Shown here: piece after piece, positions 1,758 to 25,947 of the stretch
Layout of the letters: each line of letters starts with the position of its first letter
Numbering within the stretch: position 1 is the first letter of the stretch
Sequence record: OQ828465.1
Reading direction: 5' to 3' (one strand)
Length of the DNA stretch: 64,000 bases
Program-made: the position numbers and the translations under genes
The notes under the pieces: model-generated
What the model was told of the DNA's origin: nothing
Databases searched by the model: none
What the model saw: only the letters and a program-made list of their open reading frames with translations

Positions 1758-10530
<8,773 letters not shown>

Positions 10531-20647: not shown

Positions 20648-22597
20648 TTAAACTTTTACAAGTTTATCATTTTCTATTTTCCAATTAGCATGGAAAGAAA
20701 TTGGTTGACCAGTGGTCTCATCAAGAATGTCACCAGTCTTTAACCTATTTTTAATAGCTCGATTATTTCCAAAGAATGGAACTAGTTTAGCTACTGTTAC
20801 ATCAGCTAATCCTGGATCTTTCATTACATACCAGCCAGGCGTTGAAGCCAGTTCATCATACTGGACAACTTTAGAAGTATCTGCAAAGATAACAATATCA
20901 CCATGTCGTCCGTTCTGGACACGTTGTGATAGTTTACCCCATGTGGAGTTATTATCATAAACATATACATTAGCTGTATTCAATGTCTCACCAAGGAATG
21001 TACGACGTAATGCAGTCAATACTATTGGTTTTATATTAATGTTATTCTTATATGCATTCGCTACACGATACATATACTTGGTCATGCTAAGATTAATATA
21101 TTCATAAATTTTAGCTTTACTTATCCCTTTATAATCATCCCATGCCATTGTACCTATAAGGGATGCTTCATTATAAAGAGAAGCAGGTTTTGAACTAAGT
21201 ACCACTTGATGATGCATTGTGTAAGTATAAGGTACACGTACGTTAATACGTATCTGATCATTATCATGGATTAAAAGAGTTGATCCATGAGTTATCAGAT
21301 CCCACTGAGTAATGCCCTGACTAAATAAGAATGATCCAACTAAATAGCCATTTATTTGAATATCGCCTAGATAATCCTGATGGTCAGTACCATTTGAGTA
21401 ACCTAGATTAAGATCAAAATAACGCTTAGCTGTTAGTATCTGAGTAGTATCAATAGCTTGGCCATTATCACGTGCAACAAAGATACCATCATCTACACCA
21501 ACTTGGAATCTAAATGAAATAGCATACGGTTTATTAGGATTTTCAGATGTCGTACAAAGAAAATTGTAAATGTACTCGCCAGTATGATCGAAGGTAAATT
21601 CAGGAATATCTTCTTTGTTATACGCTGGGAAAGTAACAAGCTTAATCTCACTTTCACTTGAATCACCTTTGATAACAAAGTCAGTTACTTGACCATTACC
21701 AATAGATTTATTCATACCTGTAAACAAACCAGATGATGCAGCTTTTGGTGACCAGCTTAGCATCTGATTTACAGTATATTGAACATCTGACCTATCAACA
21801 ACACCAGAGAAATAAGAACCAAAATTAAAGGCTAGTCTATTAGCGGTAAATGCAAAACTACCATTATTTTCTTTAGCATCTTCAATATTAGTGTAATCTC
21901 TTGAAGCAGAATCAGTTATAACAAAGATACCATTACCCGATTTACGCCAAGTAGCTAGATTATCGATAGTCGCCTGACTCACTCTTTCAGGAGTTAATGC
22001 GCCAGTATTATGATCTTTAGTAGAAAATAGAATACATGCATAATACTTATTAAGATCTGTTAAAGTAAGGTCTACTGTGCCACCCATCATTTCTGGGTAA
22101 TAAACATCATAGGTAGAATCTTGTACACGAGCAGCCGTATCTAGTATCTTTTTAAAACCATTACCTGACGTATTGAGGACTGAATAAGGTTCACTAGGAT
22201 TACTATCTGTGATTACTAAGAATTTCTTTCCAGTTGATTCGTACTTACTACCATTCCTAATAAACCCAATAGCATTATAAAAATATCTTACCCATCCCCA
22301 TAGATCTTGAGGGTTTGTTGTATTAGCCGGAATTTGGTAAGTATCATAGTTTAAATTATAGAATTTTGGAAAACTACAATCATAAAGAACATTACCAGTG
22401 CCATCTTGCACAACAGCAATAAATGGACTACCACCTGTTGCAGGGTCACCATCATAAGCAATGTATTCAGAGAGCACCGGAGGTAACTCCGGGCTCACTG
22501 TATAATACACCTTCTGAATATCTGAACTAAAGTTAAATTTAACTTTAGAGTTTAGTGCCACAGGACCCGGCACTTGCGACGGGACAATAGAAGGCAT
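20648..22597 (-). CDS. Virion structural protein (gp201-like)
   Basis: 649-aa ORF in the minus-strand block with the helicase; assignment by synteny. Confidence 0.65.
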   Translation of the reverse strand: MPSIVPSQVPGPVALNSKVKFNFSSDIQKVYYTVSPELPPVLSEYIAYDGDPATGGSPFIAVVQDGTGNVLYDCSFPKFYNLNYDTYQIPANTTNPQDLWGWVRYFYNAIGFIRNGSKYESTGKKFLVITDSNPSEPYSVLNTSGNGFKKILDTAARVQDSTYDVYYPEMMGGTVDLTLTDLNKYYACILFSTKDHNTGALTPERVSQATIDNLATWRKSGNGIFVITDSASRDYTNIEDAKENNGSFAFTANRLAFNFGSYFSGVVDRSDVQYTVNQMLSWSPKAASSGLFTGMNKSIGNGQVTDFVIKGDSSESEIKLVTFPAYNKEDIPEFTFDHTGEYIYNFLCTTSENPNKPYAISFRFQVGVDDGIFVARDNGQAIDTTQILTAKRYFDLNLGYSNGTDHQDYLGDIQINGYLVGSFLFSQGITQWDLITHGSTLLIHDNDQIRINVRVPYTYTMHHQVVLSSKPASLYNEASLIGTMAWDDYKGISKAKIYEYINLSMTKYMYRVANAYKNNINIKPIVLTALRRTFLGETLNTANVYVYDNNSTWGKLSQRVQNGRHGDIVIFADTSKVVQYDELASTPGWYVMKDPGLADVTVAKLVPFFGNNRAIKNRLKTGDILDETTGQPISFHANWKIENDKLVKV

Positions 22598-22607
22598 TTC
22601 TCACTCC

Positions 22608-23078
22608 TTACGGGGTATACACGGGAATATCAGCCGTCTTAATAGGTGAGTCAACTCGAATATAATAAGTGATTGGTACAGACAGGCTATACCCACGGAT
22701 ATTTAAAATCCCTGTAGATGAATCGAGATCCCAACCAATACTAGCAGAAGCGCTAATAAGCTTGCCACTAGTAGGACTAGTAGTTTCAGGGTCGATAATC
22801 TTGAGATCAACGATGGCTGTAGCCAGAGTATAATCACCCATAGAAGTAATAACTTTGGAAAGATCATAAGTAACTACATCTCCTGGGTTTAATGTACCAG
22901 TTTGAAATAGAATTGGTTTTAAACCAGTACTAGGACCTGGACCAGGGCCACCACCAGATTCTAGGATGGTTGTTACTTTGTCAACCCACCTTAAAATCGC
23001 ATTATACATTTCTTCACTGGTGGCTTCAGGCCCAAGAATAAGATCTTCACCAGTATTAGATGAATGTGGATCAGACAT
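22608..23078 (-). CDS. Probable virion structural protein (gp202-like)
   Basis: 156-aa ORF with a GGGPGPGP linker and AGGAG SD. Confidence 0.65.
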   Translation of the reverse strand: MSDPHSSNTGEDLILGPEATSEEMYNAILRWVDKVTTILESGGGPGPGPSTGLKPILFQTGTLNPGDVVTYDLSKVITSMGDYTLATAIVDLKIIDPETTSPTSGKLISASASIGWDLDSSTGILNIRGYSLSVPITYYIRVDSPIKTADIPVYTP

Positions 23079-23089
23079 TTCTGTCTCCT

Positions 23090-25201
23090 TTAAAACCGCA
23101 TATATGCGGGCTGATATGGTTTATACATACGTGTATCAAAGTCATTAAAATCAATTGCGATATCATACTTCTCAAATGATTCTTTTAGCATCTGATAAAT
23201 GATTTTATTTTCATCAAAATTATTATTTTTATCAACATAACTTTCTAATGACTCTGTGATCTCAAATGGAGATTTAATACCCATAATAGCTTCAACCATC
23301 GCCTGACTCCATTTTAGAATGTCATCTGACCTTGTTGAGATATTCGGTTCATCTTCTGTATCGAGAGTACATTGATATACGACTGTTTGTGAATCCTGAC
23401 CTTTACGGTAAATTCGAGCAATAGCTTGTTCTAGAATGTAATGCCTAAACGGTGAATTAATTGTCACCATAGTATCAGCCATCGTCATACGGACCGCTGT
23501 TGAAAGGGAAGCATATGTAGCTACCAATGGATTTAATTTAGGGTCTTTCTCAAATCTACTGATTATTTGAGGTAAATTGTCATTGGTTTTACCATACACC
23601 ACCGCCGGATGCATACCTAATTTATTGGTGTACTTATCAACAGTATCAACAACCTCAACAAACGATGTAAATGCAATCGTTTTCTTCATAGTTGATTCAG
23701 TGATACCAACCCAGTCAATATACGGTACCATGTCCACATGGCACTGAATGCGTTTAGCACCTAAAACCCTTCCCAAACATTCACCTTGTATCTTTAGCAT
23801 AACGTATTTTATAACTGATTTAATATCTCTAAAAGCAGCTATTTCATTACGAGGTAAAGTTGGCTCTATAAACATTTTTTCATATTGGTTAGATTCTTTA
23901 ATTTCTTCACCAATGTATCGCGGGTCTTGATTCTTCTGAATTATTTTAATCAAATTCTTATAGCGAGCGAAACCATCTTTCTGCGCCTGGGTCTTAAGAG
24001 AGTTCTCGTGTATCGCCATTAGTTTAGCCCAATACTTCTCATCTTCTGGTCGGCGCGCAGCATAGAACTTTACACGTTCTCTAATAAAAGCTTCACAATC
24101 ACGTTTAATGGCATTAAGAGTATACTGTGATCCATTTGGTATCTTGATACGATACGCTTTTATCCTCGGTGGTAAAACCTCAGTATCTTTCTTTTCAATG
24201 ACGTACGCAATTAACCCAAAGCGATGTTGGACAATATCTAATCCTTTCTGTGTCTCTTTTCCAAATGCTTTCTTAAAACGTTCTTCAACCTCATTGGTGA
24301 AGAGATCGTCTAATACTCTTAATGCACTTACTAATTCAGAACCAAGTGCTTTAACAGGGGTACCTGACGCTAATAATCTGTTATTAGAGTTAGACATAAA
24401 ACATATTTGCTGGAACTTAAGAGATTGTGCAGAATTAGGATCGTTCATATTGTGTGATTCATCCAGAATCACCGTAATGTTCTTACCTTTGAATATACCG
24501 CTTCTTAATAGATCAATTATTTTATCTTGCGCCTGGTAATGGGATATAAGTATTCTTTGACCGTTGTAGGCTTTATCATCAATGGTCGACCATACTTTTT
24601 GTCTTTCCTTATACATCTCAATAATAGATGGCTTCCATATTAGATCAATAGACTTCTTTTCACAAACAACTATAATGATATCCGACTCAACCATTTCAGC
24701 AATAGCCATCGTCATGAATGTCTTACCAGTACCAGGTTTACCTGCAACAATATCACCACGTAAACCATACTGGTCAATTCGATAATTATAATTTTCAAAA
24801 TAAGCTTTTTGAGACTCATCTGGTGTAAATGTCAATTTGTCTAACATCTTGAAATTGAGTCTACCTGGTACAGAGTTGGTATCTACAGGACGAGTATTTT
24901 TTAACCAGGTATATTGAAGCATTGCTTCACGGATGGCATTAACAGTTTTAATAGAGATGTATCTACTTCTATAATTCTTTACTGCTTCTAGCATGTAATA
25001 TATTTCAGGAGCAAAGAATTTATAAAATGAAATACTACGACGACTAACCGTGTTAAATAACTGCGTAGCTAATTTAGTGGTTCGCCAATACTTGTTAATA
25101 TCTCTAATGAATGCAGCACCATCAAAACCACTGATGATAATTTCTTGATCAGTTTCAGTAATTGATAGCGAGCCCATTAGCTTCCTAAATGAGTCTATCA
25201 T
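23090..25201 (-). CDS. SF2 (SNF2/DEAD-like) helicase (gp203-like)
   Basis: Walker A GKPGTGKT, DESH, SGTP motif III and QAIARIYRKGQ motif VI. Confidence 0.9.
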   Translation of the reverse strand: MIDSFRKLMGSLSITETDQEIIISGFDGAAFIRDINKYWRTTKLATQLFNTVSRRSISFYKFFAPEIYYMLEAVKNYRSRYISIKTVNAIREAMLQYTWLKNTRPVDTNSVPGRLNFKMLDKLTFTPDESQKAYFENYNYRIDQYGLRGDIVAGKPGTGKTFMTMAIAEMVESDIIIVVCEKKSIDLIWKPSIIEMYKERQKVWSTIDDKAYNGQRILISHYQAQDKIIDLLRSGIFKGKNITVILDESHNMNDPNSAQSLKFQQICFMSNSNNRLLASGTPVKALGSELVSALRVLDDLFTNEVEERFKKAFGKETQKGLDIVQHRFGLIAYVIEKKDTEVLPPRIKAYRIKIPNGSQYTLNAIKRDCEAFIRERVKFYAARRPEDEKYWAKLMAIHENSLKTQAQKDGFARYKNLIKIIQKNQDPRYIGEEIKESNQYEKMFIEPTLPRNEIAAFRDIKSVIKYVMLKIQGECLGRVLGAKRIQCHVDMVPYIDWVGITESTMKKTIAFTSFVEVVDTVDKYTNKLGMHPAVVYGKTNDNLPQIISRFEKDPKLNPLVATYASLSTAVRMTMADTMVTINSPFRHYILEQAIARIYRKGQDSQTVVYQCTLDTEDEPNISTRSDDILKWSQAMVEAIMGIKSPFEITESLESYVDKNNNFDENKIIYQMLKESFEKYDIAIDFNDFDTRMYKPYQPAYMRF

Positions 25202-25223
25202 TGCATTTTTCCTTAAGGGGTAT

Positions 25224-25470
25224 GTAAATATAACTCTAAGTCATAAGATTAGCTAACGAATAAAAATACGCACAGTGCAATGATATAGAGCAAGGCAGTT
25301 TGCGTAAAACGCACTGCACTTTAAGGGGGTGATCCAGTCGTAAATAAACCGGGGTACTAAAGTATCGTCAGGAACGACACGAACCCCAACTACGGTGCCT
25401 TGCTACTCACCGACCTCTAGATAGGGGTCGGACCTATTACATTAAAGGAGCCCACCAGGGGCTCCTTTAT
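25224..25470 (+). ncRNA. Candidate structured non-coding RNA (ends approximate)
   Basis: ORF-free GC-rich interval with multiple stems (25289-25297/25396-25404; 25410-25431), its own terminator and an upstream TATG at 25221. Confidence 0.55.
25444..25470 (+). terminator. Intrinsic terminator closing the ncRNA candidate
   Basis: AAAGGAGCCC-ACCAG-GGGCTCCTTT. Confidence 0.85.
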
Positions 25471-25497
25471 GCCATTCATTATAAATTAATTTAAATC

Positions 25498-25505
25498 TAT
25501 ATTAC
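25498..25505 (+). promoter_or_regulatory. phiKZ-type early promoter
   Basis: TATATTAC after a terminator. Confidence 0.8.
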
Positions 25506-25551
25506 AGGATTACCATAAAGATATTTATCCTTTTATAATGAGGAAAAGATT

Positions 25552-25947
25552 ATGTCCGATATTAATAGCACCAATGTAACAGATGAATTAGTACCTTATT
25601 TTCCATCGGCGGATGCCATTACTAGTTCTACTATTAGGGATGAAGTAATTCCTAATATTTTGTTATTCTACAAGAATGCTTTTAGTGACTTCCAACACGT
25701 TAGTAATATCACAGGTACTAACCAGATTGCATCAGGTTATTTACCAGGTGTAGGTTATTATTTCGAGTATAGTGTTACCGGTAATGCTAATCTTATTCCA
25801 CCTGAAGCAATTAAAGTATTACGTAATGTAATCACTAAAAATGGATATAAAGATGACATTACCATCACACCAAAAGGTTTTGGCCTAATCAATTGGTTCA
25901 TTGTAAGAGTATACGTAGATGAGCAAATTAAGAAGACTACTCAATAA
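25552..25947 (+). CDS. Hypothetical early protein
   Basis: 131-aa ORF with GAGG SD. Confidence 0.8.
   Translation: MSDINSTNVTDELVPYFPSADAITSSTIRDEVIPNILLFYKNAFSDFQHVSNITGTNQIASGYLPGVGYYFEYSVTGNANLIPPEAIKVLRNVITKNGYKDDITITPKGFGLINWFIVRVYVDEQIKKTTQ

Follow-up and report, generated by a model that had tools for sequence, protein, structure and literature searches.

The closest known analogues of the phage RNA described here are rreB and rreR of the alpha-proteobacteria (Hahn et al. 2016, PMC5711450), which it resembles in being short, structured and independently transcribed, and in carrying a conserved complement of about 17 nt to the 3' end of the 16S rRNA that reaches past the Shine-Dalgarno (SD) sequence on both sides. 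The rre RNAs are bacterial, are transcribed from sigma-70 promoters and contain a conserved ORF of 14-18 codons with a start 7 nt after the SD (PMC5711450). The 17-nt extended SD of the Bradyrhizobium rreB was found to confer strong, extension-dependent binding to the 30S subunit in co-sedimentation experiments, together with weak translation, and over-expression of rreB in Bradyrhizobium had no effect on growth (PMC5711450), which implies that for such an RNA the numbers matter. The phage RNA differs from the rre RNAs in that it has no start codon or conserved ORF, is folded into a three-way junction with a GNRA arm, and belongs to lytic giant phages; moreover, no homology between the phage RNA and the rre RNAs is detectable.

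A second group for comparison is provided by the non-coding RNA candidates of the phages phiKZ and 201phi2-1 (Gerovac 2021; Putzeys 2024; PMC11512511), which are likewise small structured transcripts with a promoter and an intrinsic terminator, some of them conserved between genera. The candidates named in the main texts lie elsewhere (gp40 5' UTR, PHIKZ298 3' UTR, upstream of PHIKZ221, PHIKZ302, gp182/gp277), most of them are the product of premature termination in a gene's own 5' UTR, whereas the RNA with the 16S complement has no fixed downstream gene, and for none of them has rRNA complementarity been reported. The Grad-seq study of phiKZ sampled cells 10 min after infection and the dRNA-seq study covers the early infection phase only, designs by which a middle or late RNA would be missed. 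Pooled ONT-cappable-seq (5-80 min) yielded 17 phiKZ candidates, and 11 sRNAs, three of them intergenic, were listed for 201phi2-1 (PMC11512511), so that the transcript may already have been catalogued as an anonymous candidate. The locus is unnamed in the main texts of Wicke 2020, Gerovac 2021/2024, Putzeys 2024, the 201phi2-1 study, the antisense-oligomer (ASO) study and the reviews, of which the recent ones state that phiKZ non-coding RNAs exist and say nothing further; no description of the family-wide structure or of the 16S complementarity was found in the literature, the reviews of 2025-2026 included.

Two further systems concern the small ribosomal subunit. Ribosome-associated non-coding RNAs such as those of Haloferax are processed from cellular RNAs and act at the decoding site, and a Val-tRNA fragment competes with mRNA on the small subunit, much as is proposed below for the phage RNA (PMC5711459, PMC11009984); the phage RNA differs in having a gene devoted to it and in being directed at the anti-SD tail. 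The ribosomal protein bS21 encoded by some phages is thought to act at the 30S platform and anti-SD region, biasing initiation late in infection (PMC9723584). It is a protein and is encoded by unrelated phages, so that the analogy is one of target only.

A non-coding RNA gene beside the helicase gene

The window analysed is a stretch of 64,000 nucleotides (record OQ828465.1), of which positions 25150-25600 are 100% identical to 212716-213166 of Pseudomonas phage phiKZ (AF399011/NC_004629); a phiKZ coordinate is the window position plus 187566. The RNA gene occupies the 350-base gap between PHIKZ203 and PHIKZ204, which are encoded on the - and + strand, respectively (Table 1). The ORF list holds no ORF of at least 30 aa within 25202-25551, in agreement with the first-pass annotation, which had described an ORF-free gap and, within it, a discrete + strand non-coding RNA gene with its own terminator between the helicase gene and an early operon. 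Judged by comparative criteria, the segment from about 25282 to 25470 on the + strand is indeed a real and independent gene, specifying a structured non-coding RNA of about 150-190 nt. The interval had originally been drawn from 25224; the conserved unit begins at about 25282, and the roughly 58 bases of 25224-25281, where the helicase gene has its 5' UTR and promoter (on the opposite strand) and the RNA its own promoter region, lie outside the conserved RNA.

Table 1. Positions in the window of the RNA gene, its parts and its neighbours
Feature	Position	Strand	Remarks
PHIKZ203, SNF2/DEAD-like helicase	23090..25201	-	Start codon 25199-25201; ORF list and NC_004629 annotation; 100% identical to phiKZ
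AATCTTATGAC, late-type TATG promoter candidate of the helicase	25240..25250	-	Predicted +1 is G at 25242; not for the RNA
ATAAAAATAC, AT-rich box, candidate RNA promoter element	25260..25269	+	Putative assignment
AATGATATAG, conserved	25279..25288	+	RNA 5' end predicted within 25280-25289
P1 5' arm, AGCAAGG	25289..25295	+	Pairs with 25398-25404
P2 hairpin, CAGU..UGCGU-AAA-ACGCA..ACUG	25296..25316	+	Stacked on P1; UUCG loop in the short form
J2/3, long joining strand	25317..25347	+	No conserved internal partner; most conserved columns of the family
TAAGGGGGTGATCCAGTCGTA in J2/3	25322..25342	+	21-base continuous complement (3 G-U) of the last 21 bases of 16S rRNA
P3 domain	25348..25396	+	ACC/GGU and GGGGU/ACCCC closing stem, small side hairpin, apical P3b
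P3b hairpin, loop CAGGA	25365-25377	+	Apical hairpin of the P3 domain
J3/1, AACUACGGUG, second joining strand	25388..25397	+	ACGG.GCC nearly invariant
P1 3' arm, CCUUGCU	25398..25404	+	Pairs with 25289-25295
P4 hairpin	25410..25431	+	Long forms only; same place in all, stem sequences differ
Terminator, GC-rich hairpin then UUUAU(GCC)	25444..25469	+	18/18 members
CTATATTAC, early-type promoter of the PHIKZ204 operon	25497-25505	+	Downstream of the RNA terminator; outside the RNA
PHIKZ204	25552..25947	+	Context gene; ORF list and phiKZ annotation

The RNA could not be assigned to any described family; inspection by eye had already failed to match it to tRNA, tmRNA, SRP, 6S or hammerhead. Rfam 15 gave no match in the whole window at gathering thresholds, and at a permissive threshold nothing with E below 1 within 25100-25650, the best being a chance match to the SraG terminator (E = 1.2); there was likewise no Rfam match at the element in ten other members, and ARAGORN reported no tRNA or tmRNA.

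The gene arrangement around the element varies among phages. The helicase gene is divergent from it in phiKZ, PA1C and Psa21 and co-directional and downstream in phiPA3, and in Phabio, 201phi2-1 and Viktualia small genes separate the two. The gene that follows the RNA is the helicase gene in phiPA3, a structural gene on the opposite strand in PA1C, and small unrelated genes elsewhere. These differences indicate that the element travels as a unit of its own, and it keeps its own signals although the neighbouring genes switch orientation. The early-type promoter beyond the terminator carries the early promoter motif of phiKZ as described in PMC7598289; the motif has four + strand copies in the window and is also found downstream of the RNA gene in Phabio, Psa21 and two uncultivated contigs (L009 and L033). 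An assignment to the class of RNAs that arise by premature termination in a 5' UTR (Putzeys 2024) was considered and rejected, since this promoter intervenes before PHIKZ204 and since the downstream gene varies.

Members and distribution of the family

The family comprises 18 distinct members, all in phiKZ-like phages, and one truncated copy. Besides phiKZ, they are found in phiPA3, PA1C, Phabio, 201phi2-1, Viktualia, Psa21 and 11 uncultivated contigs. BLAST recovered short conserved cores in phiPA3, PA1C-like phages, Phabio, 201phi2-1 and Viktualia, in each case inside a gap of 260-320 bases that has no annotation and is close to the SNF2 helicase gene; further members came from a search of IMG/VR and JGI metagenomes with a pattern of the conserved core, and the divergent member of Psa21 was recovered by scanning for 16S complementarity. 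The members always sit in the gp199-gp204 neighbourhood, and in the genomes checked for copy number (201phi2-1, phiPA3 and PA1C-like phages) there is a single copy. An apparent occurrence at 2-3 places per genome was traced to other parts of the query and discarded.

Two forms can be told apart. The long form (12 members, from the cultured Pseudomonas phages and their near relatives) bears a side hairpin on the P3 arm and an extra hairpin, P4, both of which are missing from the short form (6 members, all uncultivated). The short form is carried by distant phiKZ-like phages: in one contig, L020, genes for gp199 and gp201 homologues (30% identity) immediately precede the element, and another, L023, has the paralogous virion-protein family typical of phiKZ-like phages.

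Further searches yielded no new member. When the helicase protein was compared with IMG/VR, phiKZ itself was the sole match, and the relaxed DNA pattern GGTGATCCAGYC..CGGYGCC gave at least 120 matches, of which none was a new member after filtering. In RTH11, RP12, pEa_SNUABM_54, Goslar, OBP, EL and Yong XC32 the 10 kb to either side of the helicase gene contain no member, and this absence near the helicase gene of seven nucleus-forming phages indicates that the RNA is not a general requirement of their family.

Fold and covariation

The + strand of 25224-25470 folds with -77.5 kcal/mol against -55.7 +/- 4.1 for shuffled sequences (z = -5.3), and none of the 200 shuffles did as well, which bears out the earlier description of the interval as highly structured. 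In the architecture common to the family, P1 (7-13 bp) is stacked on P2 and followed by J2/3, the P3 arm with P3b, J3/1 and the 3' arm of P1, giving a three-way junction; P4 comes after the junction in long forms only, where its loop motif YUAUYCUAA is kept, and the GC-rich terminator hairpin is always last.

Most of the helices in the first-pass annotation could be placed within this architecture, and all the coordinates that were checked proved right. Present in the DNA are the stem AGCAAGGCA (25289-25297) with TGCCTTGCT (25396-25404), the hairpin TGCGT-AAA-ACGCA (25301-25313), ACCG/CGGT, GGGGT/ACCCC and TCGT-CAGGA-ACGA (25365-25377), the hairpin at 25410-25431, and a terminator made of a GC hairpin followed by TTTAT (25444-25469). 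The long-range stem, given as 9 bp, is shortened to 7 bp in the family model (25289-25295/25398-25404), its inner two or three pairs (GCA/TGC) being in competition with the base of the next hairpin (GCAG/CUGC). Two pairings had to be revised or given up: five pairs around a 2-base loop, as in GTACT-AA-AGTAT, are impossible, the maximum being four pairs with a UAAA loop, and the alternative CAGTGC/GCACTG, which would draw on bases that precede the conserved unit, is not preserved in the relatives. The switch or pseudoknot suggested in that annotation is hypothetical.

The short forms, taken alone, support the fold. Among these six sequences 97% of cells pair and 9 pairs change on both sides, a result reached by none of 500 shuffles, and sliding the partners against one another lowers pairing to 28-45%. 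A covariance model, R1, built from the six short forms only, detects all 12 long forms over their full length, with no other match in 337 kb; its match to the phiKZ window (25282-25411) scores 27.3 bits, with E = 6.6e-5 for 337 kb. R1 finds nothing in the 22-kb helicase regions of the seven other nucleus-forming phages and nothing elsewhere in the window.

In an alignment of 19 sequences 93% of cells pair and 18 of the 23 pairs change on both sides (99 cells), with a covariation score of 0.61 against 0.19 in shuffles and 26-38% pairing in slid controls, so that the compensatory changes in relatives by which the earlier annotation had proposed to judge the RNA are abundant. This alignment was fitted to the model, which favours structure; the detection across subgroups and the MAFFT-based result for the short forms are independent of it. 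RNAalifold on plain MAFFT alignments of the full set missed most helices because helix arms were misaligned, a fault remedied by subgroup and model-guided alignment. Compensatory changes above both shuffled and slid controls are the generic mark of a conserved structured RNA, and they are seen throughout the junction: in P1, 5 of 7 pairs have changes on both sides and 98% of cells pair across the 19 sequences, in P3 and P3b every pair shows changes on both sides, and at the base of P2 the otherwise invariant GCAG/CUGC is replaced by GGU/ACC in Psa21. Over a shorter distance, phiKZ and SL2, a phage of the same genus, are separated by 3 substitutions in the RNA and by 9 in the 50 bases preceding it; of the 3, one converts a U-A pair in P3 to U-G.

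Complementarity to the 16S rRNA 3' end

Within the RNA, conservation is highest in J2/3, which has the consensus aAGGgGGUGAUCCAGcC. The unpaired strand of J2/3, (U)AAGGRGGUGAUCCAG(C/U)C, complements the 3'-terminal 14-21 nt of the 16S rRNA, the anti-SD included, and all 18 members form 14-21 contiguous pairs beginning at the last or second-last base of the 16S rRNA. The continuous complement of at least 16 nt by which rre RNAs are recognised is thus found in 17 of the 18 (17-21 nt; 21 in phiKZ and 17-19 in most), with 14 nt in Phabio, and the small ORF about 7 nt after the SD, by which they are also recognised, is absent, the triplet at that position being GUC or GCC. The 16S ends used were those of two Rfam-verified metagenomic rRNA genes, L028 and L092. 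Many Pseudomonas genomes have exactly this end (...GGCUGGAUCACCUCCUUA), and among the matches listed are P. putida, P. fluorescens and species of the syringae group; P. aeruginosa is absent among the listed matches.

Within the 64-kb window the next longest complement to the 16S tail is 12 bases and lies outside the SD core. The predicted duplex of J2/3 with the 16S tail amounts to -27 to -38 kcal/mol over the members. SD pairings of the ordinary kind are much weaker. By thermodynamic folding, the core that complements the 16S tail is unpaired with a probability of only about 0.48, a weak GGG/UCC mini-hairpin competing for it. The SD-like core occurs once per RNA and reads GGGGG in 13 of the 18 members, its central base being mostly G and not the perfect A; an Rsm/Csr-type sponge, which needs several GGA loop motifs, was rejected on account of this single core. 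The complementarity at 25322-25342 had escaped the first-pass annotation.

Beyond the tail, J3/1 and the 3' arm of P1 show a weak colinear likeness to antisense 16S, significant in 3 of the 18 members only, and this second block was therefore dropped as evidence. Complements to phage messages were counted in this 64-kb window only, where 101 perfect 9-mer complements of the RNA outside its own locus stand against 88 expected, which is no excess.

A proposed role at the 30S subunit and its alternatives

The existence of the gene, its fold and strand, its conservation, its lack of an ORF and its complementarity to 16S rRNA are established, whereas we infer the timing of expression, the binding to 30S and any effect on translation. 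The reading that we favour, at a probability of about one half, is that the RNA acts in trans, binding the 30S subunit by way of the 16S tail and serving as a decoy mRNA or ribosome-bound RNA. A phage RNA polymerase would transcribe it in the middle or late phase, and the RNA would then base-pair with the free 16S 3' tail of host 30S subunits. The pairing, with a predicted duplex of about -36 kcal/mol, would be far tighter than that of any mRNA, so that the RNA would occupy or block the anti-SD site, and, as no start codon follows the SD core, it would do so untranslated. A decoy or ribosome-bound RNA of this kind would change which messages initiate, or would hold 30S subunits. Possible benefits to the phage are a bias in initiation, the holding or marking of a 30S pool near the phage nucleus, or a shielding of the 16S end.

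The main weakness of this scenario is that a plain anti-SD sponge would also hurt the phage, whose mRNAs use the SD themselves. A plain sponge would, moreover, need a high copy number, and pairing beyond 14 nt would require the base of 16S helix 45 to open. The conserved J3/1, the GNRA loop and the P4 loop suggest further contacts with protein or rRNA. Of the roles put forward in the first-pass annotation, namely packaging, scaffold, protein sponge and RNAP regulation, none has gained evidence; what the sequence suggests is a link with the ribosome.

Among the means by which nucleus-forming giant phages steer host ribosomes, only proteins such as PhiKZ014 have, to our knowledge, been implicated so far. 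The RNA, as a defined conserved gene with an obvious and easily mutated target-recognition strand, would make the matter directly testable, and antisense-oligomer knock-down is already established for phiKZ. Should the RNA bind the 16S tail, it would represent a new viral route to act on translation and a natural model for RNA tools with which to capture bacterial ribosomes; as it stands, it is a well-supported addition to the very few families of structured RNA described from phages.

Among the alternatives, one that is unlikely but deserves consideration is that the RNA is a protein-binding scaffold or regulator, its partner being, for example, a phage polymerase, a nuclear-shell or export factor, or an SD-recognising nuclease, and that the SD-like strand is a protein site or decoy. 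The GNRA loop, the conserved J3/1 and the P4 loop motif exceed the needs of simple pairing with the 16S tail, the centre of the SD core is mostly G (GGGGG) where a perfect complement would have A, and the PhiKZ proteins 135 and 216 co-sediment with the 30S subunit. However, a base-by-base complement of 18 nt to the 16S tail, counted from the last nucleotide and present in 18 of 18 members, is hard to explain in this way, and no such protein is known. A protein scaffold and pairing with the 16S rRNA are mutually compatible.

A bolder version of the ribosome reading, which is speculative and rather doubtful, is that of a two-part antisense clamp on the 16S 3' minor domain, with a four-way junction, that alters host 30S subunits. 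Here J2/3 would pair with the 16S tail and the 3' strand of helix 45, J3/1 (CUACGG) would pair with the 5' strand of helix 45, and the P3 arm of the RNA and the top of helix 45 would complete the four-way junction. By such a clamp the phage might remodel host 30S subunits, mark or protect them, or put them out of action, for instance by producing a ribosome pool with a blocked anti-SD and an altered choice of messages, or by shielding the 16S end from host nucleases. If true, this would be the first phage-encoded RNA that directly targets ribosomal RNA.

It is improbable that the functional transcript is the - strand, which would mimic the 16S 3' end (GGAUCACCCCCUUAA), serve as a decoy for anti-SD-binding factors or mRNAs and, in phiKZ, form part of the helicase 5' leader. 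That strand folds well too (z = -3.5 for 25224-25470), the + strand being the better folder in 13 of 18 members (p = 0.07), which is suggestive at most. The terminator flanks carry TATG on both strands and form an imperfect palindrome (GGYAUA...UAUGCC), so that the U-run and terminator alone do not fix the strand. The helicase gene is, moreover, downstream on the - strand in phiKZ, PA1C and Psa21, and in some members J3/1 with the P1 3' arm is like antisense 16S. What decides for the + strand are the loops and the G-U pairs. The P3b loop is a GNRA tetraloop in 16 of the 18 members, with GNRA-like pentaloops in phiKZ and Phabio, and 7 of the 18 have a C(UUCG)G terminator loop; these make sense on the + strand only and become UCNC and CGAA on the other. 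The terminal hairpins hold 9 G-U pairs and no A-C, so that on the - strand nine A-C mismatches would arise, and in the helices of the subgroup and short-form alignments GU pair types are present and AC types absent; the earlier argument that G-U pairs favour the plus strand is thereby upheld. In phiPA3, Phabio, 201phi2-1 and Viktualia a - strand transcript would also extend, in antisense orientation, into genes unrelated to it, and the helicase gene is served by a conserved promoter of its own that lies between its start codon and the element.

Slightly less probable still is a small mRNA or leader of the rre type, whose extended SD would direct the synthesis of a very short peptide or recruit ribosomes to a gene downstream. 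In favour of this, rreB has an extended SD of this type, and rre-like small mRNAs surfaced with the same search pattern. Yet no AUG, GUG or UUG is found 4-12 nt after the SD core; the sole constant GUG overlaps the SD and opens frames of 4 to more than 42 codons that are not conserved, and across the members there is no conserved start codon or ORF. Variation tracks base pairing and not codons, and the RNA is followed by a terminator, then by a separate promoter and a variable gene that in PA1C is on the opposite strand. Finally, an element acting at the DNA level (in replication, packaging or recombination) or a captured piece of 16S that survives without function is barely credible, for although the RNA lies at the edge of a block that is inverted between phiPA3 and PA1C/phiKZ and shows the weak colinear likeness to antisense 16S past the tail, the compensatory changes, G-U pairs and tetraloops reflect selection on RNA, and sequence that is invariant across phages with proteins about 30% identical excludes a neutral relic.

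Upstream signals and timing

The late promoter consensus of phiKZ is (-3)TATG(+1) (PMC7618050, PMC7598289), and a TATG at 25221-25224 had been taken as a late-type signal for the RNA. The motif is located there, but it is destroyed in SL2, absent in PA1C and situated in the region of the helicase 5' UTR, which makes it an unlikely promoter for the RNA. The TATG that is conserved in this region, AATCTTATGAC on the - strand, is assigned to the helicase, since the same motif also precedes the helicase gene in phiPA3, Psa21 and the contig L009.

The signals that accompany the RNA itself are of another kind. An AAA..(A/T)TAC box is found at an equal upstream distance in all 12 long forms, followed downstream by (A/C)ATGAT..TATAG, and the middle promoters of phiKZ have a weak AT-rich motif centred near -24 (PMC7598289). 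These upstream signals match a middle-type promoter no less well than a late one, so that the late timing first proposed for the RNA is one of two candidate timings, middle being the other. Directly before P1, TATAG is invariant in the long forms, with TATG in its place in the short forms, and in most long-form relatives the AUAG pairs with a CUAU past the 3' arm of P1.

Likeness to antisense 16S rRNA and flanking signals

Beyond the tail complement, the RNA gene bears a weak resemblance to antisense 16S rRNA: the second joining strand (J3/1) and the 3' arm of the closing stem P1 together form a sequence, CUACGGUGCCUUG, that is similar to antisense 16S CUACGGCUACCUUG and colinear with the tail complement. 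This similarity, which reaches significance only in phiKZ, PA1C, and phiPA3, may hint at an antisense 16S fragment as the origin of the RNA element, or at pairing that reaches helix 45. Further downstream, the conserved palindrome GGYAUA...UAUGCC lengthens the terminator stem and places TATG on both strands; it could act as a two-way terminator, as promoters starting right after the hairpin, or as both. The SNF2 helicase gene has the late-type motif AATCTTATGAC about 40 nt 5' of its start codon in phiKZ, phiPA3, Psa21, and the retrieved locus L009; this motif is probably the helicase promoter.

Features in and around the RNA gene and its relatives
Feature	Location	Strand	Remark
CUACGGUGCCUUG, J3/1 + P1 3' arm	window 25388-25404		also at homologous positions
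Imperfect palindrome around terminator hairpin	window 25436-25475		retained at this site in every relative (alignment A1)
AATCTTATGAC, late-type TATG	window 25240-25250	-	conserved 5' of SNF2 helicase
AATCTTATGAC, other copies	L001 (phiPA3) ~1707-1717; L216 ~9950-9960
Helicase gene spans	SL2 MF805716 74235-77165; phiPA3 216447-219608; PA1C 208738-211889
HEARO RNA (RF02033, 122 bits)	L026:100-316	-	contig of uncultivated phiKZ-like phage
Two tRNA genes	L018:875-948; L018:63-136	both -
GAGGAGGTGATT	L220:1657-1668		Goslar; immediately 5' of ATG

Gene neighborhood

In phiPA3 the gp201-gp203 block is reversed relative to phiKZ (window 20648-25201) and PA1C, and the RNA gene sits at the edge of the inverted segment. 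The helicase gene itself extends over 2.9-3.2 kb in SL2, phiPA3, and PA1C, compared with 2.1 kb in phiKZ, and in these three phages the match comes as two pieces, the PA1C gene being annotated as two CDS. These longer, two-piece matches suggest that an intron, intein or homing-endonuclease gene has been inserted into the helicase gene.

Other RNA genes occur near short-form copies. A HEARO RNA lies about 1.5 kb from the short-form gene in L026, and in L018 two tRNA genes follow 3' of the RNA gene on its own strand, so that it adjoins other translation-related RNA genes.

Long Shine-Dalgarno sequences on mRNAs

An unusually long SD (12 nt), GAGGAGGTGATT, directly precedes the start codon of an ordinary Goslar gene, which shows that real mRNAs of this phage group can also carry long SDs.

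A small bacterial transcription unit was also found in soil-metagenome loci (L024, L031, L032, L037, L043, L045, L049, L050, L058, L061, L064-L069, L072, L074, L077, L079, L087, L088, and L094-L096). From 5' to 3' it comprises a sigma-70-like promoter, a GGCAG..CUGC hairpin, GAGGAGGUGAUCCA, and an ORF of 11 codons (MSTESRVACG followed by R, H or L) whose UUG start lies 7 nt 3' of GGAGG; a terminator is also present. By its sequence, the unit looks like a small mRNA of soil bacteria of the rreB/rreR type known from alpha-proteobacteria, with which it shares an extended SD.
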